The notes: generated by a model not told the origin, from the sequence alone. Positions 9,545-33,706 are shown, counted from the first letter of the stretch. The stretch: 64,000 bases of DNA from Pseudomonas aeruginosa PAO1 (GCF_000006765.1 NC_002516.2); one strand, 5' to 3'. A program made the numbers and translations.

Positions 9545-9571
9545 GTTCGTCTCCTGATCGCGCTACGCGGG

Positions 9572-12177: not shown

Positions 12178-13129
12178 GCTGTACGACGGGCCGATCGTCG
12201 ACGCCCATCATCATTTCTGGGACCCGCAGGCGAACTACCACCCCTGGCTCGCGGAGGACGCCAAGATTCCGTTCCGCTACGGCGACTACAGCGCGATCAA
12301 GCGCCGCTACCTGCCGGCGGACTACTTCGGCGACGTCGGCGCACACCGGGTGGTCGAGACGGTCTACGTGGAAACCGAGTGGGACCCGCGCGATCCGCTC
12401 GGCGAAACACGCTTCGTGCATCACCTCGCCGAACGCCATGGCGCGCCCCACGCAGTGGTGGCGCAGGCCTGGCTGGACGCGCCGGACGCCGCCGAGGTGC
12501 TGGCGGCGCAGGCGGGCTTCGCACGGGTCCGCAGCGTCCGCCACAAGCCCGGCGGTCCGCAACGCCCGCAACAGGTCGGCGAGCTGCGCAGCCTGATGAG
12601 CGACGAGCGCTGGCGTCGCGGCTATGCCGAGCTGGCCCGGCACGGCCTGCACTTCGACCTGCAGACACCCTGGTGGAACCTCGCCGAGGCCGCATGCCTG
12701 GCGCGCGACTTCCCCGATACGCTGATCGTGCTCAACCACGCCGGCCTGCCGTCCGATCGCAGCGAGGAGGGGCTGGCCGCCTGGCAACGGGCCATGGCGC
12801 GCTTCGCCGAATGCCCCAACGTGGCGTTGAAGATCTCCGGCATCGGCCAGGCCGGCCGGCGCTGGAGCGTCGAGGACAACGCCTGGATCGTCCGCGAAAG
12901 CATCGCCCTGTTCGGCGTCGAGCGGGCGATGTTCGCCAGCAACTTCCCGGTGGACAGCCTGTGCGGCTCGTTCGACGACATCTATGGCGGTTTCAAACGC
13001 ATCGTCGCCGACCTGCCGTACGCCGACCAGGAACGGCTTTTCCATAGCAACGCGCGGCGCATCTACCGCACCGTACCCGACACCGTGCGCCTGCAGCAGG
13101 CGTCGCCCGACCCGAGGACTTCCCCATGA
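12170..13129 (+). CDS. Amidohydrolase_2-family protein, probable sugar-acid lactonase (2-carboxy-L-lyxonolactonase-like)
   Basis: IVDAHHHFWD, VLNHAG, LKISG, MFASNFPVD motifs. Specific function inferred from gene neighbourhood. Confidence 0.75.
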   Translation: MAELYDGPIVDAHHHFWDPQANYHPWLAEDAKIPFRYGDYSAIKRRYLPADYFGDVGAHRVVETVYVETEWDPRDPLGETRFVHHLAERHGAPHAVVAQAWLDAPDAAEVLAAQAGFARVRSVRHKPGGPQRPQQVGELRSLMSDERWRRGYAELARHGLHFDLQTPWWNLAEAACLARDFPDTLIVLNHAGLPSDRSEEGLAAWQRAMARFAECPNVALKISGIGQAGRRWSVEDNAWIVRESIALFGVERAMFASNFPVDSLCGSFDDIYGGFKRIVADLPYADQERLFHSNARRIYRTVPDTVRLQQASPDPRTSP

Positions 13130-14139
13130 ACGCTCCATCCCTACCGCGACTGGCCATGGTCCTGGGCGATCCGGCCGGCATCGGCCCGGAACTGATCGCC
13201 CGCCTGCTGGCCGACACCGAGGTGCGCGAGAAGGCGCACATCGTGCTGATCGCCGACGAAGCGGAAATGCGCCGCGGCATGCGCATCGCCGGCTGCGAAT
13301 TCCCCTACCGGCGCATCGACGCGCTGGAGACCCTGGATTTCGCCGACGCCACGCCACTGCTGCATCCCTGGCTCAGCCAGGGCGGGGACGAGTTCCCACG
13401 CAGCGAAGCGAGCGCCGTCGGTGGCCGCTACAGCCTGGAAACCCTCGCGCTGGCCCTCGAACTGACCCGCAGCGGCAGGACCGACGCGATCCTCTTCGGC
13501 CCGCTGAACAAGACCTCGCTGCACATGGCCGGCATGGACCACAGCGACGAGTTGCACTGGTTCGCCGAGCGCCTGGGGTTCGGCGGCCCGTTCTGCGAGT
13601 TCAACGTCCTCGACGACCTCTGGACCTCGCGGGTGACCTCCCACGTAGCCCTGGCCGAGGTGCCGGGCCTGCTCAGCCAGGAGCGGGTAGGGGAGGCGAT
13701 CCGCCTGATCGACGACGCGCTGCGCCGCAGCGGCCTGGCGCGGCCGCGCATCGGCGTCTGCGGACTGAACCCGCACAACGGCGACAACGGCAGCTTCGGC
13801 CGCGAGGAGCTGGACATCATCGCTCCGGCGGTGCAGAAGGCGCGCGAACAGGGCATCGCCGCCGACGGCCCGTATCCCGCCGACACCATTTTCCTCAAGG
13901 TGCAGGGCGACGCCCGTGCCTTCGACGCGGTGGTGACCATGTACCACGACCAGGGGCAGATCGCGATCAAGCTGATGGGCTTCTCCCGCGGCGTGACCGT
14001 CCAGGGCGGCCTGCCGATCCCCATCGCTACGCCGGCCCACGGTACCGCCTTCGATATCGCCGGGCAGGGAAGGGCCGACGTCGGCGCCACCCGCCAGGCG
14101 TTCGAGATCGCCTGCCGGATGGGCAGGCACAAAGCCTGA
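13126..14139 (+). CDS. PdxA-family NAD-dependent enzyme, probable 2-carboxy-L-lyxonate decarboxylase
   Basis: GDPAGIGPE, PLNK, GLNPHNG, GPYPADT, MYHDQG, TPAHGTAFDIAG motifs. Substrate inferred from neighbourhood. Confidence 0.8.
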   Translation: MNAPSLPRLAMVLGDPAGIGPELIARLLADTEVREKAHIVLIADEAEMRRGMRIAGCEFPYRRIDALETLDFADATPLLHPWLSQGGDEFPRSEASAVGGRYSLETLALALELTRSGRTDAILFGPLNKTSLHMAGMDHSDELHWFAERLGFGGPFCEFNVLDDLWTSRVTSHVALAEVPGLLSQERVGEAIRLIDDALRRSGLARPRIGVCGLNPHNGDNGSFGREELDIIAPAVQKAREQGIAADGPYPADTIFLKVQGDARAFDAVVTMYHDQGQIAIKLMGFSRGVTVQGGLPIPIATPAHGTAFDIAGQGRADVGATRQAFEIACRMGRHKA

Positions 14140-14311
14140 TCGCCTGCATGCGACGCGACAACCAGAGCGCCGCCCCTTCGTAACGCGCTCCCTGGCGCCT
14201 CCCTGTACCGTCGCGGCGGGGCAGGAGGCGTCGCACCTTCGACGAGAGACACATCGCCTGGAGCCGCAGCGCTCCACGGCTCGCTTCGGCCTGGGAAAAG
14301 GAAAAACAACA

Positions 14312-15562
14312 ATGACCCGTTCCGCTCCGAACCTGCTGAAATCCGCCTCGCTCGCTCCGGTCCTGCTGGCCGGCCTGCCGTCGCTCGCCGGCGCCGAGGG
14401 CTTTATCGAAGACGCCAGCGTCAGCCTCGGCCTGCGCAATCTCTATTTCAATCGCGACTTCCGCCAGCCCGGCGCGGCGCAGTCGAAACAGGAGGAGTGG
14501 GCCCAAGGCTTTCTCCTACAGGCGAAGTCCGGCTATACCCAGGGCACCCTGGGCCTCGGCGTCGAGCTGATCGGCCAGCTCGGCCTGAAGCTCGACAGCA
14601 GCCCTGATCGTGCTGGCTCCGGGCTGCTGCCACGCCACGCCGACGGACGCGCAGCGGACGACTACGCGCGACTGGGCGTGGCGCCGAAGCTGAAGCTGTC
14701 GAATACCGAGCTGAAGCTCGGCGAACTGCTGCCGGAACTGCCAATCCTCCTGCGCAACGACGGCCGCCTGCTGCCACAGACCTTCCAGGGCGGCATGCTG
14801 ACCTCCAGGGAAATCGCCGGCCTGACCCTGCACGGCGGGCAGATGCGTTCGCTCAGCCAGCGCAACTCCAGCGACCACCAGGACCTCTCGGTGGATGGGC
14901 GCGGCGGGGCGTTCTCCGACCGTTTCGACTACCTGGGCGCGGAGTACCGCTTCAATGCCGAGCGCAGCCAGGTCGGGCTGTGGCAGGCGCGACTGCAAGA
15001 CATCTACCGGCAGGACTACTACAGCTTGAGCCACAAGCAGAGCTTCGGCGGCTGGCGCCTGGGCGCCAGCGTCGGGCTCTTCGACACGCGCGACGAAGGT
15101 GCCGCGAAGCTCGGGGAACTGGAGAATCGCGCGCTGACCGGTTTCTTCAGCGCGACCCGCGGCGGCCACAGCCTCGGCGCCGGCTACCAGCGCATGTACG
15201 GCGACGACGGGATGCTCTACATCGCCGGCACCAGCACGCCGTTGGTCAACGACATCCAGGTGCGCAACTTCACCAGCGCCGGCGAGCGCTCCTGGCAACT
15301 GCGCTACGACTACGACTTCGTCGCCCTGGGCATTCCCGGGCTGACCGCCATGGCCCGCTACGCCAGCGGCGCCCATGCCCGGACGAAGGCGATGGACGAC
15401 GGCCGCGCCTGGGAACGCGACGTGGACGTCGCCTACGTAATCCAGAGCGGCCCGCTGAAGAACCTCGGCCTGCGTTGGCGCAACGCCATGCTGCGGTCCA
15501 ACCATGCCGCCGATGTCGACGAGAACCGCCTGATCCTCTCGTATTCCCTGCCGCTGCTCTGA
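14312..15562 (+). CDS. opdG: OprD/Occ-family outer-membrane porin (OccK subfamily)
   Basis: Signal peptide; LRNLYFNRDFR, EWAQGF, SGYTQG, DGRLLPQTF, ENRLILSY motifs. Position matches PA2213. Confidence 0.85.
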   Translation: MTRSAPNLLKSASLAPVLLAGLPSLAGAEGFIEDASVSLGLRNLYFNRDFRQPGAAQSKQEEWAQGFLLQAKSGYTQGTLGLGVELIGQLGLKLDSSPDRAGSGLLPRHADGRAADDYARLGVAPKLKLSNTELKLGELLPELPILLRNDGRLLPQTFQGGMLTSREIAGLTLHGGQMRSLSQRNSSDHQDLSVDGRGGAFSDRFDYLGAEYRFNAERSQVGLWQARLQDIYRQDYYSLSHKQSFGGWRLGASVGLFDTRDEGAAKLGELENRALTGFFSATRGGHSLGAGYQRMYGDDGMLYIAGTSTPLVNDIQVRNFTSAGERSWQLRYDYDFVALGIPGLTAMARYASGAHARTKAMDDGRAWERDVDVAYVIQSGPLKNLGLRWRNAMLRSNHAADVDENRLILSYSLPLL

Positions 15563-15587
15563 GCGCAGGGCCGCTCTCGCTGCTGCC

Positions 15588-15638
15588 CGATAACCGGCGA
15601 TTGGCTGATTGGTGAAAAGGTATTGCCTGGGGTTATCG
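15588..15638. promoter_or_regulatory. Operator-like inverted repeat copy 3 (CGATAACCG-N33-GGGTTATCG)
   Basis: Read directly upstream of the second MFS gene; shares GCCTGGGGTTAT with copy 1. Confidence 0.65.
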
Positions 15639-15747
15639 ATGAATGCGCAGAAGTGATTATCCGCGCGGGAGCGGCCTGGCTACAGTCGGCCCAACGCAAG
15701 CGGCCATGCCGCCTCCGCGTCGAACAACAACAAGAAGGAAGCCCTCC

Positions 15748-17070
15748 ATGAGCGCCATGAACGACCACGCCAGGCTGCTGTCCTCGGCGATCGCCACCAG
15801 CCGCCTGCGGCTCCTGCCTTTCCTGGTCCTGATGTATGTACTGGCTTTCATCGACCGGGCCAACGTCGGCTACGCGCGGGCCTTCCTGCAAGCCGACACC
15901 GGCCTCGGCGATGCCGCCTTCGCGTTCGGCGCAAGCATCTTCTTCATCGGCTACGCCTGCTTCGAGGTGCCCAGCAACCTGATGCTGCACCGCCTCGGCG
16001 CCAGGGTCTGGCTGTGCAGGATCATGGTCACCTGGGGCCTGGTCTCGGCGGCGATGATGTTCGCCGACGATGCCATGACTTTCTATGTCCTGCGCTTCCT
16101 GCTGGGCGTCGCCGAGGCGGGCTTCTTCCCCGGCATCATCCTCTACCTCACCTACTGGTTCCCGCAGCGCAGCCGTGCCCAGGCGCTCGGCCTGTTCTAT
16201 TTCGGCCTGCCGCTGGCGCTGGTGCTGGGCGGTCCGCTGTCCGGCTGGCTGCTGGAGTTCCACGGCATCTTCGGCCTGGCCAACTGGCAGTGGCTGTTCG
16301 TCACCGAGGGCCTGCTGGCCTCGCTGGTCGGCATTGCCGCCTACTTCTACCTGGTCGACCGCCCGCGCGATGCCGGCTGGCTGAGCGACGAGCAGAAGCG
16401 GGCGCTGGAAGGCGAGCTGGCCGAAGAAGACACCCGCAAACAGGCACGCGGCCCGCACGGCTTCCTCAGCGCCCTGCGCAGCGGCCAGGTGCTGAAGTTC
16501 TGCCTGGTCTACTTCACCATCCAGATGAGCGTGTACGGCGTGGTGTTCTACCTGCCGACCCGCATCGCTAGCTTCCTCGACGGCCAGGTCGGCCTGAACG
16601 TCGGCCTGATCACCGCGATTCCCTGGGTCTGCGCCCTGGTGGTAACGCGCCTGGTGACCCGCCAGGCCGACCGCAGCGGCCAGCATCGCCAGCTCGCGGT
16701 GGCCATGCTGGGCATGGCCGCAGCCGGTATCGCCGCCTCGGCGCTGGCCGGCAACCTGGGCCTGGCGGTGATCGCCTTCTGCTTCGCCGCGTCCGGCTTC
16801 GTCTCGGTGCAGCCGCTGTTCTGGACCCTTCCCACCGGCTACCTGAGCGGTGCGGCCGCGGCCAGCGGCATCGCCCTGATCAACTCCCTGGGCAACCTCG
16901 GCGGCTTCGTCGCGCCGAACCTCAAGACCCTCATGGAAAGCCAGTTCGCCGACCCGCGCGCCGGCATGTTCGCCCTGGCCGCCGTCGGCCTGCTCGGCGC
17001 CTGTCTGCTGGCCCGGCTGAAGACTTCCGGATCCTCGTCCGTCCCGCTGCGAGCGCGGCAGGCCGGCTGA
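15748..17070 (+). CDS. MFS transporter (ACS family, TtuB/RhmT-like)
   Basis: AFIDRANVG, FEVPSN, LGVAEAGFFPG, INSLGNLGGF motifs. Start at ATG 15748 after AAGGAAG. Confidence 0.92.
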   Translation: MSAMNDHARLLSSAIATSRLRLLPFLVLMYVLAFIDRANVGYARAFLQADTGLGDAAFAFGASIFFIGYACFEVPSNLMLHRLGARVWLCRIMVTWGLVSAAMMFADDAMTFYVLRFLLGVAEAGFFPGIILYLTYWFPQRSRAQALGLFYFGLPLALVLGGPLSGWLLEFHGIFGLANWQWLFVTEGLLASLVGIAAYFYLVDRPRDAGWLSDEQKRALEGELAEEDTRKQARGPHGFLSALRSGQVLKFCLVYFTIQMSVYGVVFYLPTRIASFLDGQVGLNVGLITAIPWVCALVVTRLVTRQADRSGQHRQLAVAMLGMAAAGIAASALAGNLGLAVIAFCFAASGFVSVQPLFWTLPTGYLSGAAAASGIALINSLGNLGGFVAPNLKTLMESQFADPRAGMFALAAVGLLGACLLARLKTSGSSSVPLRARQAG

Positions 17071-25067: not shown

Positions 25068-25095
25068 ATTTAACATAATATACATTATGCGAATC
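25068..25095 (-). other. dif: Chromosomal dif site (XerCD recombination site)
   Basis: Minus strand reads GATTCGCATAA-TGTATA-TTATGTTAAAT. XerD arm and spacer are identical to E. coli dif (GGTGCGCATAA TGTATA TTATGTTAAAT); XerC arm differs at 2 positions. Confidence 0.95.
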
Positions 25096-25100
25096 CATGG

Positions 25101-26400
25101 TGTTACGGCCAAATAGTAATGGCGTCTAGGGTTTCCCTCCTGCATCACAGGAGGCACGCCATGACTGCGGCAACTTGCGGATGGGTCACCATGAGCATGC
25201 GGGAGCTGGATCGCCTCAAGGTCATCGAGGCAATCATCGAGGGTCGGTTGAAACCTGCCGCTGCGGCGCAGCGTCTGCGCCTGACGACACGTCAGGTGCA
25301 CCGGCTGGTTCTGCGTTATCGCGAGGACGGCCCAGCCGGCCTAACATCTCGTCGACGTGGTCAGCCGAGTAACCGGCAGTTGTCGCCAGGTCTGGAGAAT
25401 CCCGCCATTAGCTTGATTCGACGGAACTATAGCGACTTTGGTCCAACTCTGGCCCAGGAAAAACTGGTCGAGTGCCACGGCCTTAAGCTGGCCAAAGAAA
25501 CGGTACGACGGATCATGGTTGATGCCGGCATGTGGGTACCGCGCAAGCAACGGCCGCCCAAGGTCTATCAGCCACGCAACCGGCGCGCCTGTTGCGGCGA
25601 ACTGATCCAGATCGATGATGGAAAGCCGCTGGCCTTCTACAGCGACAAAGCCAGCGTGTTCCGCAGTAACCACAAGGCGCCTCAGGGCGGCGACGGCTAT
25701 ACCCAGTTCGGCCGAGCGATGTACGAGTTGAACATCGAGAGCTGCGCCAACAGCAGCCAGGCCAAAGGTCGTGTGGAGCGTGCGAACCTCACTCTGCAGG
25801 ATCGCCTGGTCAAGGAGCTGCGGCTTCGCGGAATCAGCAACATGGCCGACGCCAATGCCTTTGCAGCCCACTTTATGGCCAGCTACAACGCGCGTTTTGC
25901 CAAGCCGCCGCGCTCTGAGCATGACTGCCATCGCCCGCTGCACAGTGATGAAGATTTGGAGCTGATCTTCGCCTGGCGAGAAGCGCGGCGGGTTTCGCAG
26001 CGGTTGACCGTGCAGTACGACAAGGTGCTGTATCTGCTAGCGGACACTCCGCAGTCCCGTCGCCTGGCGGGTGATCACGTCGATGATCTACCACTACCCG
26101 AATGGCCGCATCGAGCCCAGGGTGGACGGCACCGCCCTCCCCTTTACCACCTACGACAAACTCTGCGAGATAGACCAGGGTGCCATCGTCGAGAACAAGC
26201 GCTTGGGTCATGTGCTGCAAGTCGCCCAGCTCGTCCAAGCGCAGCGCGACAATCGGCGCTCGCAATCGGTACCGGGAAATCCGCGGCAGTCAACGCAAGG
26301 CAAGATGCTGTCGAAGAAGGCGCAGCGAGAACTGATGCCGGAAGATATCGCCGCTGCCCTGGATAACACGCCACCATCGAGGCGAAGTCGCCATGCGTGA
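25101..26400 (+). mobile_element. Degenerate IS1202-family (formerly ISNCY) insertion sequence abutting dif
   Basis: Starts TGTTACGGCCAAATAGTAATG 5 bp after the XerC arm and carries a transposase pseudogene. No right IR was found by eye. Confidence 0.75.
25161..26400 (+). pseudogene. IS1202/ISNCY DDE transposase pseudogene
   Basis: MSMRELDRLKVI, GELIQID, YSDK, ANSSQAKGRVER, QYDK motifs. IQIDD is joined directly to GKPLAFYSDK (internal deletion near 25618). A frameshift near 26075 continues as YHYPNGRIE...DQGAIVENKRL. Confidence 0.85.
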
Positions 26401-26631
26401 GTCAGCGCCGAGGCACTGAAGATACTAGTGGTTGCCGGAGCTGCGCGGGACTTACGTGCTATTCCTGCGCCTTCCGGCCACGGTTGGCAGCTCCAAGTGC
26501 GCTACAGTCCCGACGGTCAATATTACCCGCTACGTTCTCGACGTGAACTTGTGCGCATATTTGGATCACTGGACTCGCTTAATCGGTACGCAAATCGTTT
26601 GGGCATCCACACGTATAGCGTGGAGTTATAA
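26401..26631 (+). pseudogene. Small plasmid/transposon-type protein, probably 5'-truncated
   Basis: Frame VSAEALKILVVAGAARDLRAI...WQLQVRY...LRSRRELVRIFGSLDSL..YANRLGI..YSVEL resembles ~80-aa mobile-element proteins. No ATG at its apparent N-terminus. Confidence 0.4.
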
Positions 26632-26885
26632 CTGTGACACGAATTTCCCCATGTGGGGAGTCGACAGGTTTCTAGAAAAATAGTTCGATAAGTGTAGCGA
26701 CTTTCGTTTGCAAACCGCTACAAATAGCGCTGCGGGCCAACCAGCTGAGCTTTTCCAACACCTGACAGTGTGGAATAACGCTTCTCCGAGTTCCGGAATT
26801 AAGGGCGATGGTATCCACATATTATTTAGCGGGCGTGATAATTTTTTATCTGGCCCTCTTTATCGAAGGAGAGGGCCAGATAACA

Positions 26886-27542
26886 CTAGATCGCTGCAAA
26901 ATAGGCCAGCAGCAAGGTTACTGCGGTCGTATAGCGGAGACCCGATTTGATCGTATTGAATACGTCGCTGAAGTTGGGAGCGTCCAGACGTAAACCAACA
27001 CCAGGTCCGACTAACGCTTTGATATCCTCAGGGAGCGTCATTGCCTGCCAAGTACCAGGAGTCAGTGTCCTCAGATTCACACCGTAGGAAACCAGTAGTC
27101 CGGATTCCTGCGAAATGCCTCCGGATGCATCCGTAGAGAAACCAACGTCGGTTGGATAGACGTTCGGACTGCCCTTGAAGCGGTCAAGATATCCACTGCC
27201 GAAACGGGCTTTTATTCGATCAAGATTCTGCGCCATGGAGGTGAGCAAAGGAAGTATCTCAACGTTGCAAACACGTTCCTTTTCATTAACCATCCTGAAA
27301 CCAATGGTTACGCCGTTGGCTATTTCCTGGGCAAGCAACGTCGAGTATTGCTGGTCCGCTTTGCTGATGTCTCCGCCCGGAATGAATTCCGGGTGTAGCC
27401 TCAGCGGAATGTCCCATGCCTCTATAGTCTGTGCTTCGGGGAAGACAAAGCCAGGATTGCATTGACGGGCAAAACCCTTATAGATATTAGCCAGGGATTG
27501 ACCAGGATTCTGGTAGATATTGATCTCGGCCATCGTCGCCAC
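26886..27542 (-). CDS. Hypothetical protein with hydrophobic C-terminal tail (PA2222-like)
   Basis: 218-aa ORF starting 2 bp after the muramidase stop, with AGAGG SD. No recognisable motif. Confidence 0.75.
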   Translation of the reverse strand: MATMAEINIYQNPGQSLANIYKGFARQCNPGFVFPEAQTIEAWDIPLRLHPEFIPGGDISKADQQYSTLLAQEIANGVTIGFRMVNEKERVCNVEILPLLTSMAQNLDRIKARFGSGYLDRFKGSPNVYPTDVGFSTDASGGISQESGLLVSYGVNLRTLTPGTWQAMTLPEDIKALVGPGVGLRLDAPNFSDVFNTIKSGLRYTTAVTLLLAYFAAI

Positions 27543-27544
27543 CT

Positions 27545-28564
27545 CTAGAGTCCCAGGGATCGTTGGAGATAGTCCGCGCGATTGTTCAATCGCCTGGCTA
27601 TGCCATCGCTCGGATCGGTACTGTTGGGAGTACCATTCCAGTTCCTCAACTCCCTAATGGCGGCTAGCCAGTCGCTCTGGGAAATAGCAGTCTCAAAGTT
27701 TGGGAACGAGGAATACTCACCATAGTGGTAATACAGGTCTGTCACTATGGTTTTGACCGCCGGAGGTAAGGTGCTCCACTGCTGGAACTTCACCTTCATC
27801 CGATCAGTGACCTTGATCATCTTGGCGGTAAAGAGGGACAGCCCGTCTTCATCTGTGAGTACCGGGATGAGTTGGGCTAATGCCTGGAAGGTCGCGGTGT
27901 TCGCTCCTTTCAAGCCGAGGGCGGGGCGAATTTTTTTGCGCGTGGATTCAGCAATGTTCAGAGCCTGAATGCCGGATTCATCGTGCTGGCCGACATCGAA
28001 GCCATAGCCAATCGTTACACCTGATTCACCGTTGGGGTCAGAGGTCGGAATAGTAGCTCTGTTGCCTCGCCCACCAGGTGGAAGCTCATGACGGGCGGTG
28101 AAATCGATATTAATACCCATTTCAATCAGATAGGAAATATTGGACTGGAGGCGGCTGACCTTATCGGCTTTGTCACCATCGATGCGGTCTTGGATAAAGG
28201 TATTGATCTGCTGGTTCAATTGCACCTGGAGGTCGCTCACCGAAATACTGTTGGCTCCTCCGGTTTCGGCGACCGTACGAATAGTGACCTCATGAACCTT
28301 GAAGTAGTCGTCGAAGACTAGAACGGGCCGCCCGGCAGTCTGGCTTATGACCTGCGTCAGTTGCCCCGTCAACCCACCTTGTGCTGAGTAGCTGGGGGAT
28401 GACAGCCAGTCGGTATAGAGGTCAGGAATTCCGTGAGTAATTCGGATAGGCTCTGGTTCCGCTGCGAGCAGAACACGCTGTGCCTCCTCTCGTTCTGGAT
28501 TTTCTAGGTAATTGTATAGCCGCTCCAGATTGCGCTGAAGGGTCTGATCCAATTCTCTATTCAC
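27545..28564 (-). CDS. Pesticin C-terminal (T4-lysozyme-like muramidase) domain protein (PA2223-like)
   Basis: IDFTARHE...IP...SGVTIGYGFDVGQ and LP...T...LYYHYG...FPNF.....W...IRELRNW...RR..RADYL match the pesticin muramidase pattern. No signal peptide. Confidence 0.8.
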   Translation of the reverse strand: MNRELDQTLQRNLERLYNYLENPEREEAQRVLLAAEPEPIRITHGIPDLYTDWLSSPSYSAQGGLTGQLTQVISQTAGRPVLVFDDYFKVHEVTIRTVAETGGANSISVSDLQVQLNQQINTFIQDRIDGDKADKVSRLQSNISYLIEMGINIDFTARHELPPGGRGNRATIPTSDPNGESGVTIGYGFDVGQHDESGIQALNIAESTRKKIRPALGLKGANTATFQALAQLIPVLTDEDGLSLFTAKMIKVTDRMKVKFQQWSTLPPAVKTIVTDLYYHYGEYSSFPNFETAISQSDWLAAIRELRNWNGTPNSTDPSDGIARRLNNRADYLQRSLGL

Positions 28565-28596
28565 CTTAGTCTCCTCTGCTTAGTGAAGCCAATTTG

Positions 28597-29340
28597 TTAT
28601 TTCATTGACTGTTCGCACTCGCTTTCTAGACGATTGAACTCAGTAGAATACTTATCATATTCATTTTGCATTTTTTCCGGCAAATACTCTCGCTTCAGGT
28701 CTCTGAAGAAGCTGCCCTTCTCTAGTATCTTCTTGCATTGGTGATTTTTGGCAGACAAGGAGAGATGTGCCGTATGAAAAACACGAGAGAGATAACCAAA
28801 ACCTTCAAACATATCCCTACACTCTGTTATCAGTTTTCGAGAAATCCAGTAGGCCTTCTCTGTCTCGTTATTCTTCAGTGCTTTCTTCACTTGCTTGTCG
28901 TTGAATCTTATAGAGGCGGGCTCGCAGATTGGGGAAGGCTTCCAATACGTACCAGTAAAACCTGCTGCCGCCCCGCAGAAGCCCTGACAGTCCCTGCTTG
29001 CGGCTCCTTTCTCTATGGTAATTCTGTCATCATTCAGTTTGAAAACGACATCGCACGACATATCGCCGATGCCACGGACGTCGACCTGCACATGACCTGA
29101 CTCTATAGTTCCATTCAATCCGCAAGCATGTGCATTGTGTCCAGTGCTTCGTATCCGAAACTTTTGAAGTCCTTCGAATAACGGAGATATCGTCAGCAGC
29201 CCACTATTTCCAGTCCTATAGTAATCCCCAGGAGGGAAGTAGCTCTTTGGTTCTTCAGCGACACAAAGAGTGATATTGTAGTAAAGGGTGAGTATGGCAA
29301 AAATGCTAATGCTTTTGAGCTTCATGTTTATGCCCTGCAT
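28597..29340 (-). CDS. Secreted Cys-containing protein, candidate muramidase inhibitor/immunity (PA2224-like)
   Basis: Sec signal (MKLKSISIFAILTLYYNITLCVA; likely start 29325); HACGLNG...SCDVVF...DCQGFCGAAAGFTGTY pattern. Confidence 0.65.
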   Translation of the reverse strand: MQGINMKLKSISIFAILTLYYNITLCVAEEPKSYFPPGDYYRTGNSGLLTISPLFEGLQKFRIRSTGHNAHACGLNGTIESGHVQVDVRGIGDMSCDVVFKLNDDRITIEKGAASRDCQGFCGAAAGFTGTYWKPSPICEPASIRFNDKQVKKALKNNETEKAYWISRKLITECRDMFEGFGYLSRVFHTAHLSLSAKNHQCKKILEKGSFFRDLKREYLPEKMQNEYDKYSTEFNRLESECEQSMK

Positions 29341-29572
29341 GAAAGCAGCTAGGTGGGGCGCTGGGTGATCCCATATAGGATGGTTTTTTGCTGGTCAGAT
29401 CGACTGATCTATAAGTTCCGTCGAGCAGGCTAGTCCGCCCAAAAAACACAAGCAGACTTGTAAGAGTCATTCTGTTTTACCAGCACTTCATGTTCAACAT
29501 CACTAAAGTTTAGACGTCATTGAGCATGAGCTGGAAAAAGTTGCGGCAACGACCCTAGACGCTGAACGCTGC

Positions 29573-29989
29573 TCACCTGAGGCGTTCCACTTCCTTGCGA
29601 AACATCACTCTCTGCTTGAAGCTGAAACCTCCGCCACCATCCAGCAGCGCCGGCGGAGCAACCGGTAGATCGGGCTCGCGGCAGGTGGCTATCACGCGCT
29701 TGGCGAAGACTTCATCGAGCGTACTGCGGCTCTTATCATTCCCCGCGCCGTACTGTACCCGGCAACTGCTTATGCGCCCCGACGAGCTTGCGAAGCGGAA
29801 AAACACCATAACATCGGCCTCGGGGATCTCATCTCCCGGTGCGAACAGCGGGTAACGAAGCCTCTTGGCGAATTCCTGGCGGAATTCCTGGATAAAAATG
29901 GCCTCTTGCTCTGCTCGCTCCTGCAAAGTGACTGAATGGGAGCAGCCGCCGATCAGACTCAGCAATACCAATAGGCAAACTATCCTCAA
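29573..29989 (-). CDS. Lipoprotein with TonB C-terminal-like domain (PA2225-like)
   Basis: TTG start and lipobox IGGC; RLRYP...V.V.F....SGRISSCRV...LDE......PP pattern. Confidence 0.6.
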   Translation of the reverse strand: MRIVCLLVLLSLIGGCSHSVTLQERAEQEAIFIQEFRQEFAKRLRYPLFAPGDEIPEADVMVFFRFASSSGRISSCRVQYGAGNDKSRSTLDEVFAKRVIATCREPDLPVAPPALLDGGGGFSFKQRVMFRKEVERLR

Positions 29990-30032
29990 CGCTCTTCCTC
30001 CTTGAAAAAGAGGCAGTCTTTTATTTTAGTAT

Positions 30033-30533
30033 CTAAAAATGACTCTTGACGTCTAAGCCAAGAACTGCAAGAGCTTCCAGCGCCAGGTTTTGACCTTCTG
30101 CAATACCCGAATTATGTGCAAACTCGACAAGTCGCTCGATTACTCTGACGCCACCCTGATCTGGCTCGACAAATTCCGATATATTATCCATAGCAACAGA
30201 TGCGTCCCACGCAGCCTGACTAAGCAGCTCTTTATACAATGCATCAGCGCTAGATATATTACGAATATTTGCGAGATTAAGCCTGATTCGATCCAAGGCT
30301 TCGTGCGCGATCTGAAGTAGCAAATATGGAAATGGATTCTTTTGAGTTCGACGCTTCCTGCATGAGTCGCTAATTAGTCCAGCAAGCATTGCTGATCCTT
30401 CGGCCTCAATGCGAAGGGAATCATCAGCAATCGAGATTGTCCGCGCCTTCGCAATATAGCCCAAAACGTAAGCATCGAACTGAGTCTCGGCAATCATAGA
30501 CAGAATCTGATTATTACGATTATTGAAATTCAT
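30033..30533 (-). CDS. qsrO: Quorum-sensing repressor QsrO
   Basis: ATG at 30533 with AAGGAG SD gives 166 aa. Lies directly downstream of vqsM as in PAO1; symbol assigned by synteny. Confidence 0.75.
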   Translation of the reverse strand: MNFNNRNNQILSMIAETQFDAYVLGYIAKARTISIADDSLRIEAEGSAMLAGLISDSCRKRRTQKNPFPYLLLQIAHEALDRIRLNLANIRNISSADALYKELLSQAAWDASVAMDNISEFVEPDQGGVRVIERLVEFAHNSGIAEGQNLALEALAVLGLDVKSHF

Positions 30534-30567
30534 AAGATGCTCCTTGCCCAATCTCAAACTAGATAGA

Positions 30568-31545
30568 TCAGTGGAAACTGTTTCTGAATTCTGTAGTAGA
30601 CTGCCCGGTCCAACGTCTGAATGCATGTCTAAAACTCGCTGTTTCCGAGTACCCCAGAATATCGCTAATACGATCAACTGGTATCGATGAATTCAGTAGC
30701 AGTGCAATTGCTCGTTCTTTGCGGGCCTTATCTACAATCTGGCGATAAGTGCAGCCCTCGTCCGCCAAGCGACGTCTTACCGTCCGCTCATTCATGCGTA
30801 AATACTTTGCGGTAGTCACCAAGCTAGGGTATTGATCTGGTATGGAATCAAGGAATAACTCGATTCGCTGACGGAGCCCTCCCATCTCTACTTCCAACAG
30901 AGCATTGAAACTCTCACCTGCCATAGTCAGGGCCGACTGAAATACCGCCGGATTGGCAGTCGCCAGTGTTCTATTCAACTGATGAGCTGGAAAGCTAAAT
31001 ATTATGTCATTTCCTTCATGCTTCACAGGCAAAGAAAAGAAACCTTCATATATTGTTTTATCTGCGCCGTGCACAGGCACTGTCAATGCAGAGATGGGAA
31101 AGTCATTACCTAACAGATCCATAATGAGCTTGTAGGTTGCAGAGGCTATAACATTTACATGAAACTGACGGGATGCGTCATTCCACTCTGGCTTAAAGTT
31201 AACTGAAATATGGATTTCTACTTCGTAATTCTCCCTAGGCTTGACGCCAACATTAGCTATATCACGATTGAACAACTTGACATAGGCCCTGATGACTTTC
31301 AAAATATCACCTACGTTCTCGGCGCATAGCAACGCCAATCCTATCACGCCATAATCAGATATATGGTAATAAGTTCCAAGATTCAGTCCTTCTTTTCCTG
31401 AATACCCCTTGCTGACTATCCAGTTGTAAAGTGCGTCACTTCTTGACTCTTGTTCTGCCGCAAAGGGTGGTATTGCGATATCACGATCACGAAGATAGTT
31501 CTGCAGAGGGCGCCATTCAAAATCAAATATGTGTTCGGTCACCAT
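30568..31545 (-). CDS. vqsM: AraC-family regulator VqsM
   Basis: N-terminal ligand domain plus C-terminal double HTH (MNERTVRRRLADEG, ILGYSETASFRHAFRRWTGQS). 325 aa; alternative GTG start at 31557. Confidence 0.88.
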   Translation of the reverse strand: MVTEHIFDFEWRPLQNYLRDRDIAIPPFAAEQESRSDALYNWIVSKGYSGKEGLNLGTYYHISDYGVIGLALLCAENVGDILKVIRAYVKLFNRDIANVGVKPRENYEVEIHISVNFKPEWNDASRQFHVNVIASATYKLIMDLLGNDFPISALTVPVHGADKTIYEGFFSLPVKHEGNDIIFSFPAHQLNRTLATANPAVFQSALTMAGESFNALLEVEMGGLRQRIELFLDSIPDQYPSLVTTAKYLRMNERTVRRRLADEGCTYRQIVDKARKERAIALLLNSSIPVDRISDILGYSETASFRHAFRRWTGQSTTEFRNSFH

Positions 31546-31553
31546 GTCTATAT

Positions 31554-32765
31554 TCACCTCACCCCTACTGTTCTTGATATAGCCCTGAACGCTGCAAGTG
31601 CCTCATGCTCCATACGGATGCCGTCAACGTTGTAGTCGACATACGCGGAGGTCTTTGCAATCACCACACGCCTAAGTGGATTTACATAAATAAACTGCCC
31701 GTACACTCCGATAGCCAAGAACTCCCCTTCTTTGCCTTCTGGAATCCACCACTGGTAACCATACCCAAGATTTGGCTCACCATCCTCTATGTAACGTCCA
31801 GGACGCAAGTGAGCACTCCGAGGTTTGGTTGATGCCTTGACCCACTCAGCACTTACAATTTGACTTCCAGTCAGGCTGCGACCGCCATGAAGAAATAATA
31901 GACCAATGCGTGCAAAGTCTCTTAGGCAAAGGTTCACCCCACCGAATGCTAGCTCTGTGCCCCGATCGTCTGTTAACCAAGCACCTTCACATTCGGCACC
32001 CAGTTGGGGCCAAAGTCTTTGATTCATAAACTGTGAGGGGCCCATACCAGTCGCGCCCAATAAGACCATACCAAGCACCTGGGTATCTACGCTAACGTAG
32101 TGGTGCACTCTCCCCGGGGCATCTTCTCTTCTCAATGAACTCACTTTTTCATTTACTGATCCGCCAAGCGCTATAGTCCTACCTAGCTGGTTGATATCGG
32201 AGTCCGAATTCCCGTAGTCCTCACTGAAAGCTATTCCTGATGACATCTCAAGCACATCTCTCAAAGAAACACCCGCATATCCGCCAGCAGAAAGCTGTGG
32301 GGCGTACAGGTTCACAGGATCTAGCAGACTGTGTATTGATCCTTCATCAACTGCCATTCCAATCAAGAGGGACATTAGTGATTTGCTTAGCGACCAGCCA
32401 ATAGCAAGGCTTTTCGCACTATTGCCCAGGTAGTATTCCTCAAAGGCAATGCGATCGTCACTGAGAACTATAAGGCCGGTGGTATTGCTGCTCGCCAACC
32501 AGTCTTTAAAGCCAATCTCGTGACCTTGAAAGCTAAATGAGCCAGGCATATCCCTGAGGTTTTTTTCAAAAAAATGAGCCGCTCCGCTCTTCTTTATTGG
32601 GACCGAGTTAAACAGTCTCGGCATTGCTCGAAAATTTTCAGCAATTTTCCCCGAGTCAAACAAAGTGTAAAAATTCCACACTCTCACACCTGCACTACCA
32701 ATGCAGGCGATGCTAAAAAAGATGAGAATCATTGAGAGGAAAATAGCATTTCTCTTATTTATCAT
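31554..32765 (-). CDS. Serine hydrolase, beta-lactamase class C-like/NylB family, exported (PA2228-like)
   Basis: SxxK (WSLSKS), YxS (HYVS), YGYQWW and GVYGQ motifs; N-terminal hydrophobic helix. Confidence 0.88.
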   Translation of the reverse strand: MINKRNAIFLSMILIFFSIACIGSAGVRVWNFYTLFDSGKIAENFRAMPRLFNSVPIKKSGAAHFFEKNLRDMPGSFSFQGHEIGFKDWLASSNTTGLIVLSDDRIAFEEYYLGNSAKSLAIGWSLSKSLMSLLIGMAVDEGSIHSLLDPVNLYAPQLSAGGYAGVSLRDVLEMSSGIAFSEDYGNSDSDINQLGRTIALGGSVNEKVSSLRREDAPGRVHHYVSVDTQVLGMVLLGATGMGPSQFMNQRLWPQLGAECEGAWLTDDRGTELAFGGVNLCLRDFARIGLLFLHGGRSLTGSQIVSAEWVKASTKPRSAHLRPGRYIEDGEPNLGYGYQWWIPEGKEGEFLAIGVYGQFIYVNPLRRVVIAKTSAYVDYNVDGIRMEHEALAAFRAISRTVGVR

Positions 32766-33706
32766 TCTTGTCGATCTCTCAGTTTGTGCTAGCTCGTCTC
32801 GACCCAGCTAACAGCCAGTGACTATCCGGTAGTGGAGCAAGGTTAAGTCCTTAAGGACTTTTCTCTTAAAGGTGAAGATCAAGGCATTTCACCATCTACT
32901 GATATTTAATTTTAACTCGCTTAACACTACTCCGCACGCATGCCATGCACTACTATTATCTGAGTCGCGAAGGTATCCGCCTCCCTTGGACTATGCTTTC
33001 AATTTAGCAACACGAAACACTGCAGCATGATCGATATCGCCCTTGGATGAATCGGCAGACTCATCAATAGGCGCCCGCAATAAACAAGACCCAACATCAC
33101 CGCATATCCCGGAGGATCAGCAACAGGATAGATTCAGTCTTTTTCATTATTTCCATCCGCCGCCTCATGCGTACTACTAGCCCGAAAGCTGATAAAACCA
33201 GCATGAAGCATCTTTTTGCTAGAGTATCTTCGGACAAATGCCGGATATTTTCGGACACCCTCTTCGGCAGGTCCTTAGCGGCACCATGTCTTATCTGCGC
33301 TTTTATTTCATTAAACACCCCATAGAGAGTACTAATGACTTGTCGTCCAGATTGTAACTATCGTAGATGAGTCGACTAGAGGTATTCGCTACAATTTATA
33401 GATTCGAAAATTCATTTCATGCTTGGAGATATCGATTTAACACTTATCTTGTGTTACTTCTGCGCTAGGTTCCGTACGCAAAGTAATGTCGTAAGCACCG
33501 TAGCGTGCAAGCCAGCGTGACCATTACGCCAAGATTCTTGACGAGCTTCAGAATCCCACGGCCAGCTCAGCTAGGTCCTGGGGACTCCCCGCCCACCGAG
33601 GTTATCGACGCATCCGGAGGGTCTGGCGGCTTGACAGCGGGCGAAGGCTTGGCGGACTCTATATTGTATTTAGTCGATACCATCTCGCATCTTAGAGAAC
33701 CCTCCC

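Follow-up and report, generated by a model that had tools for sequence, protein, structure and literature searches.

Conserved gene trio for a predicted pesticin-type muramidase, a lysozyme-fold paralogue and an exported protein in a low-GC island near dif of Pseudomonas aeruginosa PAO1

Results

Four genes in a low-GC island

The window, the whole 64,000-nt stretch of Pseudomonas aeruginosa PAO1 (NC_002516.2) that was analysed, carries four co-oriented ORFs on its minus strand, PA2225, PA2224, PA2223 and PA2222, where the initial annotation had placed them (29989..29573, 29340..28597, 28564..27545 and 27542..26886; 138, 247, 339 and 218 aa). Two of these lengths depend on the choice of start codon. 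For PA2224 an ATG at 29340 gives 247 aa, while NCBI uses the second ATG at 29325 (242 aa). For PA2222 a GTG at 27542 gives 218 aa, while NCBI and PDB entry 2IGS use the ATG at 27533. The 2-bp gap first described between PA2223 and PA2222 therefore holds with the GTG start only and becomes 11 bp with the ATG. The features of the region are as follows:

25068..25095, minus strand: chromosomal dif site, a neighbour outside the cassette, 1 mismatch to consensus
25119..26366, plus strand: IS-type ORF, PA2221-like, between dif and the cassette (Pfam, blastn)
26826..30003, minus strand: four-gene cassette block PA2225-PA2222 with its 3' hairpin (blastn to a second locus, L011)
26846..26883, minus strand: perfect 14-bp inverted repeat with a 10-nt loop, 3 bp past the PA2222 stop
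26886..27533, minus strand: PA2222, 215-aa DUF3218 protein (PF11508; identical to PDB 2IGS)
27545..28564, minus strand: PA2223, 339-aa predicted pesticin-type muramidase (Pfam, profile, Foldseek)
27668..28063, minus strand: Pfam Pesticin match (PF16754), PA2223 residues 168-299
28115..28564, minus strand: N-terminal region of PA2223, residues 1-150, an orphan domain (phmmer, AF2)
28597..29325, minus strand: PA2224, 242-aa predicted exported protein with signal peptide (ORF, signal-like segment, Cys)
29573..29989, minus strand: PA2225, 138-aa predicted lipoprotein (TTG start, AGGAGG, LIGGC)
30033-30677, minus strand: qsrO, upstream in the same low-GC island (Pfam, PMC3923755)
30568-31557, minus strand: vqsM, likewise upstream in the island (Pfam, PMC3923755)
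31554-32765, minus strand: PA2228, likewise upstream in the island (Pfam, PMC3923755)

As first noted, the ORFs are low in GC (0.44-0.56 versus 0.65-0.71 in the flanks), and the low-GC island spans ~26400 to 33500. The four genes and the hairpin behind them form a single continuous blastn match of ~3.19 kb at 85% identity to L011 9310-12499. That copy sits in an unrelated mobile context, and similarity ends at 26826 and 30003. Because of the low GC and the occurrence of the same cassette in other mobile contexts, we conclude, in line with the initial annotation, that PA2225-PA2222 were acquired horizontally. Compared with the second allele, all four genes are under purifying selection (dN/dS 0.13-0.37) and are therefore real, constrained genes. 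The inverted repeat, which falls within the block common to PAO1 and L011, probably marks the 3' end of the cassette transcript; a simple terminator scan misses it because its tail is A-rich, not T-rich.

The adjacency to dif was also borne out: the site lies 1.8 kb from the cassette, differs at one position from the consensus of PMC6199493 (no chance matches are expected), and the sign of the GC skew flips at ~26-30 kb. In the PA2221-like ORF between the two, Pfam gives helix-turn-helix domains only, with no integrase-core (rve, catalytic) domain. Its first ~425 bp recur in two other loci (L017/L018; 81% identity over 453 aligned bases), placed ~1.2 kb beyond a PA2225-like block.

Upstream, the genes at 30033..32765 carry AraC and beta-lactamase domains among their Pfam matches. 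PA2225-PA2222 have been published as the distal part of a vqsM/qsrO operon, with cotranscription and co-overexpression data for PA2228-vqsM-qsrO and the cassette genes (PMC3923755). As qsrO, vqsM and PA2228 are absent from L011 and all other trio loci, they lie outside the mobile block, though cotranscription with the cassette can occur.

PA2223 is predicted to be a pesticin-type muramidase

PA2223 matches PF16754 with 60.2 bits (cut-off 25.8; E 3e-16) over residues 168-299. Pesticin is its sole Pfam domain, and no PAAR, VgrG, Rhs or MIX-type trafficking domain was found by Pfam. A profile of its family matches pesticin chains at E 3e-11 (pesticin residues 196-332). When the AF2 model was searched with Foldseek, the top nine matches were all pesticin (E 5e-5, rmsd 3.4) and the next were phage endolysins; the alignment to pesticin covers ~203/339 columns, that is, the activity domain only. 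The model is mostly confident over residues 130-339 (10-residue block means 61-94, mostly >70), and pLDDT is <50 across residues 19-127.

Three residues, E160, T184 and D190, are invariant in an alignment of 7 family members, E160 lying just upstream of the Pfam Pesticin envelope. They are spaced by 24 and 6 residues, compared with 23 and 6 for Glu-178, Thr-201 and Asp-207 of pesticin, which are reported to be essential (PMC3390615). Thr and Asp align directly with those of pesticin in the family profile; the catalytic Glu was assigned by spacing and invariance because it falls outside the aligned stretch. Pesticin homologues have two other strictly conserved residues, Pro-187 and Gln-301, mutation of which has a ~10-fold effect; the Gln position is occupied by His in PAO1 PA2223, by Gln in most relatives and by Asn or Thr in two, and the Pro falls outside the aligned stretch. 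With residue roles taken from PMC3390615 and PMC9620997, sequence and model together predict that PA2223 is a pesticin/T4-lysozyme-type muramidase with an intact catalytic triad, and the lysozyme pattern first noted in the sequence was upheld by both Pfam and Foldseek. The NCBI annotation of the enzyme already reads 'pesticin C-terminus-like muramidase'.

No signal peptide (as initially observed), transmembrane or hydrophobic segment, or Cys was found in PA2223, which argues for a cytoplasmic location in the producer. The N-terminal ~150 residues, described at the outset as of no known kind, indeed proved to be an orphan: a phmmer search of 1.84 billion representative proteins found no relatives outside the family, all 8 matches being members of it or fragments thereof. 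The first 10 residues differ among lineages. In homology tests, which would miss an import domain of separate origin, the translocation/TonB-box and receptor-binding domains of pesticin have no counterpart in PA2223.

PA2222 resembles a lysozyme that has lost catalytic residues

The initial annotation had called the product of the downstream gene an unknown partner with a hydrophobic tail. PA2222 is in fact a DUF3218 protein (503 bits to PF11508, E 8.6e-152, model positions 1-213 of 213), identical across 215 aligned residues to PDB 2IGS, a structural-genomics structure of this same protein. The C-terminus is indeed hydrophobic, but it stays under the usual transmembrane threshold (maximum KD19 1.24) and belongs to the crystallised full-length protein.

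Comparison of PA2222 with the PA2223 family by hhalign gave a probability of 96.4% (E 1.3e-9) over residues 128-199, and the PA2223 model matches 2IGS chains in Foldseek with probability 0.87-1.0. In these alignments T184 of PA2223 pairs with L150 and D190 with N156. Throughout the PA2222 family, Leu (in one lineage Glu) stands in place of the Thr, and an invariant Asn in place of the Asp. The alignment revealed no conserved Glu at the extrapolated catalytic position; a conserved acidic residue occurs ~55 residues upstream in the sequence alignment. PA2222 is thus a soluble lysozyme-fold paralogue of PA2223 without the catalytic Thr and Asp. In the tabulated and related loci a PA2222-type gene always directly follows the muramidase gene, and DUF3218 was found here in no other setting than immediately behind such a pesticin-type gene. 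Judged by the literature that was searched, the link between DUF3218, the lysozyme fold and the neighbouring muramidase is new.

PA2224 is a constant exported neighbour, PA2225 an optional one

PA2224 has a hydrophobic, signal-like segment at its N-terminus and contains 9 Cys, 8 of them invariant in the family alignment. Signal peptides and the eight invariant Cys recur in homologues from all four lineages of the locus, in keeping with the original description of an exported, Cys-rich upstream protein. Its AF2 model (pLDDT 80) combines a beta-barrel (residues 33-128) with a helical repeat (136-241); it has no significant PDB or viral fold match and none to a known lysozyme inhibitor. As a conserved exported neighbour of PA2223, PA2224 is a reasonable candidate for a periplasmic partner, inhibitor or immunity protein.

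PA2225 has a strong ribosome-binding site (AGGAGG) before a TTG start, hydrophobic residues 3-13 and a LIGGC lipobox that is kept in its homologues; PSORT gives a type II signal (PMC3923755). The label of TonB-C lipoprotein that it had received is unsupported, since neither Pfam (no family at E<=10, TonB_C included) nor PDB searches by phmmer and a five-sequence profile (no TonB chain at E<=10) gave a match. Nor is it a constant member of the system: homologues occur beside two different trio lineages (78% identity in L011, 85% in L017), and PA2225 is absent from the others. We regard it as an optional part of the module.

The trio is shared by mobile elements of Pseudomonas

PA2224, PA2223 and PA2222 were found together in the window and in 40 of 43 fetched loci. 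Of the remaining loci, two are contigs of ~1.5 kb and the third has just the enzyme, as a distant viral homologue. Wherever a related locus is long enough for the trio to be seen, the trio is there, save in one strain variant (L035) in which PA2223 is truncated, with loss of its catalytic part, and PA2224 is also missing. The loci fall into four lineages at 22-52% identity, and the trio persists through changed gene order as well as this divergence. Its carriers are prophages, integrative conjugative elements (ICEs) and integrase/Tn3 islands. All hosts are P. aeruginosa or P. paraeruginosa except for one short metagenome-bin contig, which is probably contamination. The PAO1 and L011 alleles hardly differ in the muramidase domain but do so by 27% in PA2224, where dS is threefold higher.

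In one lineage the trio is part of the cargo region of an ICE, with Gabija-like, ParDE and dynamin-like genes as neighbours; in another it is close to DUF4224 and LexA-type repressor genes, which are integrase-proximal in a prophage-like region. PA2222-PA2226 and the PA2224 homologue of the ICE lineage have no match in PADLOC-DB 2.0 at E<=0.1. Pesticin-type domains also occur in Vibrio and Pelagibacter phages; no Pseudomonas phage in a 50,697-record collection encodes a relative.

No finding connects the module with TonB import or a T6SS. The N-terminus is an orphan, and in eight tabulated loci covering all four lineages the module has neither vgrG, hcp or PAAR nor an adaptor gene as a neighbour, a test that would miss orphan Hcp-dependent cargo effectors. 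Loci with tabulated genes likewise have no TonB-dependent receptor or lysis gene beside the module.

Discussion

The closest known system is pesticin/Pim of Yersinia pestis (PDB 4AQN, 4ARQ; PMC3390615), which has in common with PA2223 a PF16754 C-terminal muramidase domain with Glu, Thr and Asp. The two proteins are also similar in total size, lack a signal peptide and adjoin a gene for an exported protein. They differ in that the N-terminal 150 residues of PA2223 are unlike the translocation and receptor-binding domains of pesticin, and the conserved Gln of its homologues is His. The PAO1-type module further has an extra, obligatory lysozyme-fold partner (DUF3218); PA2224 is a 27-kDa, two-domain, eight-Cys protein whose family occurs in Pseudomonas only; and the module resides on chromosomal islands, prophages and ICEs, whereas pesticin is carried by a small plasmid. 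The same catalytic domain family and essential residues are found in TssI2-TsiI2 of Vibrio fluvialis (PMC9620997) and VgrG3cp-TsiV3cp of V. cholerae (PMC9927483), toxins that act only in the periplasm and whose immunity proteins have a Sec signal. These Vibrio toxins are C-terminal extensions of VgrG spike proteins within T6SS clusters; PA2223, in contrast, stands alone as a 38-kDa protein, VgrG, PAAR and adaptor genes being absent from its surroundings, and the gene coupled downstream of it encodes a predicted cytoplasmic pseudo-lysozyme, not an exported protein.

Tse3-Tsi3, an orphan H1-T6SS pair of P. aeruginosa, also joins a muramidase to periplasmic immunity. Like PA2223 and PA2224, it couples a signal-less peptidoglycan hydrolase, encoded far from a T6SS cluster, to an adjoining gene for an exported protein. 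It belongs to another enzyme family, has two genes and not three, and is part of the core genome, whereas the PAO1 cassette is strain-variable and on mobile elements. Finally, T4/P1/P22-type endolysins and the pesticin-domain lysozymes of Vibrio and Pelagibacter phages have the fold predicted for PA2223, are signal-less, lie on mobile DNA and likewise need another factor to get to the wall. Unlike phage lysis cassettes, the module has no holin or spanin; PA2223 has an extra N-terminal domain, and its conserved partners are not known from such cassettes.

The best reading, to which we give an even chance, is that PA2224-PA2223-PA2222 form a mobile peptidoglycan toxin/immunity module. In its favour are the predicted enzyme identity and intact catalytic residues of PA2223, its likely cytoplasmic location, a PA2224 partner with signal peptide and eight invariant Cys in all four lineages, the persistence of the trio through divergence and altered gene order, purifying selection on all four genes, and the fact that a strain-variable, polymorphic, element-borne trio is the usual population pattern of toxin/immunity loci. 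The joint loss of the catalytic part of PA2223 and of PA2224 in L035 is consistent with linked loss. Pesticin-domain toxins paired with Sec-exported periplasmic immunity are established for the Yersinia bacteriocin (PMC3390615) and for Vibrio T6SS effectors (PMC9620997; PMC9927483), and PAO1 tolerates strong co-overexpression of the whole operon (PMC3923755). Several observations speak against it. A near-identical muramidase domain with a divergent PA2224 (PAO1/L011) is unexpected for a tightly co-evolving pair, and the gene coupled to the toxin, the usual immunity position, encodes cytoplasmic PA2222 rather than PA2224. No known lysozyme inhibitor is matched by the PA2224 model, the N-terminal domain of PA2223 is common to no other toxin, the tabulated loci have no T6SS, TonB-dependent receptor or lysis gene beside them, and the Gabija-like/ParDE/dynamin-like ICE setting suits a defence role equally well.

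That setting raises what we consider the least improbable of the alternatives, though still an unlikely one: a module for phage defence or exclusion that mobile elements carry as cargo. PA2224, with or without PA2225, would work in the envelope to ward off incoming phage or conjugative DNA, or else the muramidase/pseudo-lysozyme pair, from the cytoplasm, would lyse infected cells prematurely. Besides the ICE cargo lineage between Gabija-like (OLD-type ATPase and UvrD-type helicase), ParDE and dynamin-like genes, the lineage near DUF4224 and the LexA-type repressor occupies a usual spot for accessory cargo of a prophage-like region. Vibrio and Pelagibacter phages also use the pesticin-type domain, and T4 spackle, a periplasmic inhibitor of phage tail lysozyme with PDB entries among the Foldseek matches of PA2223, offers a precedent. 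Yet none of 5027 PADLOC models matched, sensor, nuclease and NTPase components are all absent, the same kinds of islands also house toxin/immunity loci, and a cytoplasmic muramidase needs a membrane breach, which in infection comes only once phage progeny are complete. A further alternative is a cell-wall enzyme that serves the carrier elements by lysis or peptidoglycan remodelling, for example phage or vesicle release by lysis of a subpopulation or wall opening for a transfer apparatus, with PA2224 limiting periplasmic damage; we hold this to be less probable still. The trio is always on a prophage, an ICE or an integrase-bearing island, phage endolysins are its enzyme's closest structural relatives after pesticin, and a signal-less endolysin-type enzyme dependent on a membrane breach is the classical phage arrangement. 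Against this, there are no adjacent holin or spanin genes, wall-opening enzymes of transfer systems normally have signal peptides, and the Pseudomonas phages of the 50,697-record collection hold no relative. Moreover, the island that holds the PAO1 cassette is a remnant whose surroundings have no intact transfer or phage genes, and the cassette is nevertheless under purifying selection.

The interpretation originally offered, a pesticin-like TonB-imported bacteriocin or T6SS effector with PA2225 as a TonB-C-type lipoprotein of the system, seems to us about as doubtful, if anything slightly more so. The layout of PA2223 (~150 aa plus a muramidase domain, 339 aa) resembles that of pesticin (357 aa), the top nine Foldseek matches are all pesticin, and PA2225 recurs by two different trio lineages. 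To our knowledge, all P. aeruginosa strains carry T6SSs. But the pesticin alignment is limited to the activity domain, no relative of the N-terminal domain is joined to another toxin, Pfam gives no PAAR, VgrG, Rhs or other trafficking domain, the tabulated loci show no T6SS or receptor gene, and PA2225 has no TonB_C match and is missing from most lineages. A role for the cassette as a regulatory accessory of the vqsM/qsrO quorum-sensing locus, in QS and T3SS repression and not in cell-wall attack, is very improbable. It would account for cotranscription and co-overexpression with PA2228-vqsM-qsrO and for the block of T3SS induction by PA2225 together with qsrO (PMC3923755). However, plasmid deletion of PA2222, PA2223 and part of PA2224 left QS suppression unchanged (PMC3923755), the intact conserved triad is given no role, and the occurrence of the cassette without qsrO or vqsM in L011 and every other lineage largely refutes this explanation.

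Altogether, the observation made in the initial annotation is confirmed and its interpretation partly supported. Its statement that the genes had not been described holds for their function, but not for the operon, which has been published (PMC3923755), or for the enzyme, which NCBI names. If the trio is a toxin/immunity module, it is one uncharacterised to date. PA2223 would then be harmless in the cytoplasm of the producer and active once inside a periplasm, most probably in a rival Pseudomonas cell, and could be delivered either as cargo of one of the T6SSs of the species or by release on lysis followed by receptor-mediated import. PA2222 would be its non-catalytic partner, acting to stabilise or chaperone it or, delivered together with it, to bind glycans, while PA2224 would serve as the protecting immunity protein in the periplasm.

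Organization of the cassette and its surroundings

The initial annotation had described four co-oriented, AT-rich ORFs adjacent to dif, and each of these points held. The coordinates match exactly and all four ORFs lie on the minus strand; GC content is 0.44-0.56 in the island against 0.65-0.71 outside it; and the dif site is at 25068-25095, 1.8 kb from the end of PA2222. The window is a chromosome segment of the P. aeruginosa PAO1 type, and PA gene numbers were assigned from gene order and from the descriptions in PMC3923755.

Features of the cassette region (window coordinates)
29989..29573, minus strand: PA2225, 138-aa ORF
29340..28597, minus strand: PA2224; the NCBI start at 29325 gives 242 aa
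28564..27545, minus strand: PA2223, 339-aa ORF
27542..26886, minus strand: PA2222; NCBI and the PDB entry start at the ATG at 27533, which gives 215 aa
25119-26366, plus strand: IS-type ORF between dif and the cassette; Pfam finds helix-turn-helix domains only
30042-30065, minus strand: terminator-like hairpin with T-run, overlapping the qsrO stop, approximately 40 bp before the cassette block

The low-GC island spans about 26.4 to 33.5 kb, and Pfam places qsrO, vqsM and PA2228 inside it as well. As the terminator-like hairpin overlaps the qsrO stop codon, it hints at two separate units, qsrO and the cassette, linked via read-through, the number of terminator-like matches in this region being not above shuffled expectation. 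The cassette block ends with a perfect inverted repeat of 14 bp that immediately follows PA2222. Since no integrase-core (rve, catalytic) domain was detected in the IS-type ORF with Pfam, it looks like a degenerate transposase gene.

The dif search used the consensus printed in PMC6199493, from which the PAO1 site differs by one mismatch; the GC skew switches sign in the same area. A model in which the island is a Xer-integrated element found no support: the window holds no other dif-like site with 8 or fewer mismatches. In a second copy of the four-gene cassette (L011, 9310-12499), a dif-like site at 7464-7491 (one mismatch to PAO1 dif) also lies 1.8 kb away, on the other side of the cassette and in the opposite orientation, and the flanks are unlike the core genes of the window. 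A position near dif may recur with this cassette; neither the PAO1 nor the L011 copy is bounded by a second dif-like site. We also compared the dif end in three of the IMG/VR contigs (L020, L023 and L026 among L020-L028). In L020, identity to the window covers the cassette and stops inside dif, and beyond lies a small element with a filamentous-phage-type (RstA-like) replication protein, encoded in two consecutive ORFs with one break, and an RstB-like gene. In that strain, therefore, a filamentous-phage-like element is integrated at this dif, with the cassette outside it. In L023 and L026 identity ends slightly before dif, at about window 25118-25281.

PA2223 carries a pesticin-type catalytic domain

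The proposed pesticin-type domain of PA2223 was borne out by both HMM and structure searches. Residues 168-299 match Pfam Pesticin (PF16754) at E 3e-16, and a family profile finds pesticin chains in the PDB at E 3e-11. An AlphaFold model was built from seven family members, and most of it is confident between residue 130 and the C-terminus; when it was searched against the PDB with Foldseek, the best nine matches were all pesticin (E 5e-5, ~203 aligned columns), followed by phage endolysins. E160, T184 and D190 are invariant across the family; T184 and D190 align with pesticin Thr-201 and Asp-207, and the Glu-to-Thr spacing is 24 residues in PA2223 and 23 in pesticin. Alanine mutants of these Glu, Thr and Asp residues are inactive in pesticin (PMC3390615) and likewise in the Vibrio fluvialis effector TssI2 (PMC9620997). 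At a fourth conserved position, pesticin Gln-301, the PAO1 allele has His. The catalytic domain of PA2223 is a member of the Pesticin family and has its testable defining features: the family match, the predicted lysozyme fold and the catalytic Glu, Thr and Asp. NCBI labels members of the enzyme family "pesticin C-terminus-like muramidase".

As first described, the 339-aa protein has no signal peptide; it is also devoid of hydrophobic segments and of cysteines. Its N-terminus is poorly modelled (pLDDT <50 over residues 19-127), and a search of residues 1-150 against 1.84 billion representative proteins returned no relatives beyond its own family. Because only own-family relatives were found, the N-terminal 150 aa, correctly called unknown at the outset, are an orphan domain and not a trafficking module common to other toxins. 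A shared delivery domain was rejected on the same result, and no sign of polymorphic-toxin-type domain shuffling was seen. By import-domain homology PA2223 is not a pesticin-type bacteriocin, and by domain or linkage it is not recognisable as a T6SS effector, although either mode of action is possible. We also considered a phage lysis cassette and rejected it: PHROGs gave the enzyme only two families, both of unknown function, and tblastn against 50,697 phage records found Vibrio and Pelagibacter phages only, at 26-28% identity.

PA2222 (DUF3218) resembles PA2223

PA2222 belongs to DUF3218 (Pfam, E 9e-152) and is identical to PDB 2IGS, a structural-genomics entry labelled "Protein of Unknown Function" and released in 2006. 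Three independent comparisons tie it to PA2223. BLASTP aligns PA2223 residues 180-219 with PA2222 residues 146-185; profile-profile comparison matches PA2222 128-199 with PA2223 165-233 (probability 96.4%, E 1.3e-9); and the PA2223 model retrieves five 2IGS chains from the PDB (probability 0.87-1.00, 124-178 columns). The PA2223 family profile reaches 2IGS too, in the same stretch. At the catalytic Thr position PA2222 has Leu (Glu in one lineage), at the catalytic Asp position an invariant Asn, and at the extrapolated general-acid position no conserved Glu. Given these replacements, PA2222 is best read as a lysozyme-fold pseudo-enzyme, the residue-level alignment covering part of the fold. The hydrophobic tail reported for this protein is present as a hydrophobic C-terminus but does not reach membrane-spanning level, being below the usual transmembrane threshold; with hydropathy under threshold and the full-length protein crystallised, we rejected a tail-anchored membrane protein.

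A table of Xanthomonadales T6SS loci (PMC6653060) lists a "DUF3244/DUF3218" protein among the neighbours of orphan vgrG genes in Lysobacter gummosus. This entry is the sole hint of a link between DUF3218 and T6SS, and of the family outside Pseudomonas.

PA2224 is a predicted periplasmic protein of a new family

The description of PA2224 as Sec-exported and Cys-rich proved correct: a signal peptide is present, and of the nine cysteines eight are invariant over eight family members at only 22-28% identity to PA2224. The signal peptide recurs in every lineage, including one whose gene call had missed it. In the structural model (pLDDT 80) an eight-stranded beta domain (33-128) is followed by a helical repeat (136-241). 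A known lysozyme inhibitor fold was rejected: Foldseek against the PDB and the viral models of BFVD gave weak matches only (best E 0.05 and 1e-3), to lipocalin-like barrels and TPR/PCI-like repeats, with no known lysozyme inhibitor among the best 50, and a sequence profile found nothing in the PDB. We thus predict that PA2224 represents a new family and is periplasmic and disulfide-bonded, and from its location and linkage we infer that it may inhibit the enzyme.

PA2225 behaves as a separate block

The predicted lipoprotein PA2225 starts at a TTG behind a strong ribosome-binding site and carries a lipobox. Its earlier labelling as a TonB-C protein had to be dropped, as there was no Pfam family at E≤10 and no match in the PDB with either the single sequence or a profile. 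Homologues at 78-85% identity occur only beside the PAO1-type allele of L011 and in part of the ICE lineage, where the gene is placed downstream of the PA2224/PA2223/PA2222 trio. PA2225 acts as a separate block of ~510 bp (window 30003-29494; 9054-9563 in the ICE-lineage loci L017 and L018; 1935-2443 in L019), whose 5' junction, 14 bp before the start codon, is common to L011 and the ICE-lineage loci. In the latter the PA2225 protein is 84-85% identical, against only 24-47% for the adjoining trio proteins. About 1.2 kb past the PA2225-like block, these loci also contain a segment that matches the IS-type ORF over its first ~425 bp (25101-25543) at 81% identity.

The module is mobile, polymorphic and under purifying selection

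The enzyme family is tiny and essentially confined to P. aeruginosa. The enzyme gene is followed directly by the DUF3218 gene in the window and in 40 of 43 fetched loci (the other three being two contigs of ~1.5 kb and one with a distant viral enzyme homologue alone), and a PA2224-type gene is present in every enzyme/DUF3218 locus except L035. We sorted the loci into four lineages: the PAO1 type, two in which identity is ~48-52% (enzyme, DUF3218) and 28% (PA2224), and one ICE lineage at ~45% (enzyme), 47% (DUF3218) and 24% (PA2224). Of the two intermediate lineages, one is carried by a prophage-like region, close to its integrase-proximal DUF4224 and repressor genes, and the other by an integrase-bearing island adjoining mutY. 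The gene order in the ICE lineage is enzyme, DUF3218, exported protein: adjacency of enzyme and DUF3218 is constant over the lineages, and the gene for the exported protein changes place.

The PAO1 cassette is a discrete block of DNA (30003..26826), 85% identical to the L011 block, which sits between integrase, KfrA and Tn3 genes and has neither qsrO nor vqsM. The horizontal acquisition proposed for the cassette is upheld by its low GC and by the recurrence of the block in this unrelated integrase/Tn3 setting, together with the prophage-like and ICE lineages. None of 72,556 plasmids searched with blastn matched the cassette. Between PAO1 and L011, dN/dS is 0.13-0.37, all four genes being under purifying selection. 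For PA2224 the value is 0.14, and we rejected positive selection on this gene; its larger divergence reflects a dS threefold higher than that of its neighbours, indicating that the allele is older or has recombined. Alleles identical to PAO1 PA2225 and PA2222 are each found on at least 1000 public contigs, as are other variants of the two genes; the commonest PA2224 variant is on 781.

Outside P. aeruginosa/paraeruginosa-type DNA, one genome per species and metagenome contigs yielded neither the module nor DUF3218 (the scans used short peptide patterns, by which distant members would be missed), except on one 3-kb contig binned as Finegoldia magna (L014, JAWGCW010000038.1). This contig carries a complete trio of a 48-51% identity lineage and is most likely a binning contaminant, not evidence for the module in Firmicutes.

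Several individual loci deserve description. In the strain variant L035 (OBJZ01000030.1), unrelated DNA takes the place of all of the island beyond window 27884, toward higher coordinates: PA2222 is untouched, PA2224 and PA2225 are missing, and of PA2223 just the last 109 residues are left, without the catalytic part. In L001 (9700-12443), L002 (7906-8606) and L007 (9792-12273) a truncated, high-GC fliN lies directly downstream of the trio, and fliO, fliP, fliQ and fliR come after it (and flhB as well in L007); this partial copy of the flagellar export gate is in the integrase-bearing island beside mutY, away from the expected flagellar sites. Finally, the ICE-lineage trio in L008 and L009 is flanked (4654-7492 and 12768-16728) by a Gabija-like pair (OLD-type TOPRIM ATPase and UvrD-type helicase), two ParDE-type toxin-antitoxin pairs and a resolvase, with dynamin-like genes in L008. 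These flanks resemble the part of a pKLC102/PAPI-type ICE that carries defence or addiction cargo.

Previous work on the operon

PA2228-PA2222 are treated as the vqsM operon in PMC3923755: a deletion mutant overexpresses the whole of it 20-100-fold, quorum sensing is repressed by qsrO on its own, T3SS induction is blocked by qsrO together with PA2225, and nothing changed when PA2222, PA2223 and a portion of PA2224 were taken off the plasmid. qsrO lies within an accessory block gained or lost as a unit (PMC6902481). Transposon insertions in PA2222-PA2223 have been reported, and a deletion attempt failed (PMC3462791). PA2223 appears once in a pppA-ppkA transcriptome table, beside stationary-phase and quorum-sensing genes. 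In the literature searched, no function was assigned to PA2222-PA2224, DUF3218 was not linked to lysozymes and no pesticin-like toxin of P. aeruginosa was described. The initial view that these genes had not been described as a toxin system therefore stands as regards function, but the operon itself is published (PMC3923755) and the enzyme is named by NCBI.

Interpretation

Judged from sequence, the locus encodes an intact, signal-less pesticin-type muramidase, an obligatory lysozyme-fold partner without the catalytic Thr and Asp, and a conserved Sec-exported, putatively disulfide-rich third component, and it is mobile, polymorphic and under purifying selection. The three-component architecture (an obligate pseudo-lysozyme plus a new exported family) is undescribed for the pesticin-domain systems that we found. 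A toxin/immunity module is the most economical reading, because in the two characterised kinds of pesticin-domain toxin, the Yersinia bacteriocin and the Vibrio VgrG effectors, an enzyme without a signal likewise goes with an immunity protein exported by Sec, because the population pattern is that of toxin/immunity loci, and because L035 loses the catalytic part and PA2224 together and keeps PA2222; we give it an even chance of being right. The enzyme would attack peptidoglycan in the periplasm, to which it would need delivery, PA2224 would protect the producer and its kin, and PA2222 would assist the enzyme without catalysis. Against this reading, however, PA2224 is unlike any known inhibitor and diverges independently of the near-unchanged catalytic domain, and the classical immunity position is taken by cytoplasmic PA2222. 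As to a delivery route, we found no TonB box homology, no trafficking domain and, beside the module in the loci with tabulated gene calls, no receptor, lysis or T6SS gene.

A purely regulatory role is nearly excluded because the cassette is found without qsrO or vqsM. Defence or exclusion stays live, if improbable, because the ICE lineage has Gabija-like, ParDE and dynamin-like genes as its neighbours, against which stands the finding that PADLOC returned no match to a defence system. Lysis in the service of the carrying element seems slightly less probable again. Returning to the toxin/immunity module, a fuller form of it would be a three-component antagonism system, so far of P. aeruginosa and its sister species only, in which the muramidase is obligately paired with a dead DUF3218 paralogue, neutralised by new periplasmic inhibitors of disulfide-rich beta-barrel/helical-repeat type, and delivered via the orphan N-terminal domain. 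We put this forward tentatively, as a possibility that we would sooner bet against. We know of no precedent among peptidoglycan toxins for the pairing of an active toxin with a pseudo-enzyme.

A major opportunistic pathogen has PAO1 as its reference strain, and the interbacterial toxins of this strain (pyocins, T6SS effectors) are often considered to be mostly catalogued. The enzyme annotation was already in public databases; what had gone unrecognised is a likely toxin module, a conserved and widespread accessory, at the end of the much-studied vqsM/qsrO operon. Phenotypes of earlier operon insertions and overexpression may involve a cell-wall enzyme and its partners. 2IGS/DUF3218, an orphan structure since 2006, gains a concrete functional context, and PA2224, if it is an inhibitor, would represent a new family of lysozyme-type inhibitor. 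Altogether, four hypothetical proteins become a specific, checkable model.
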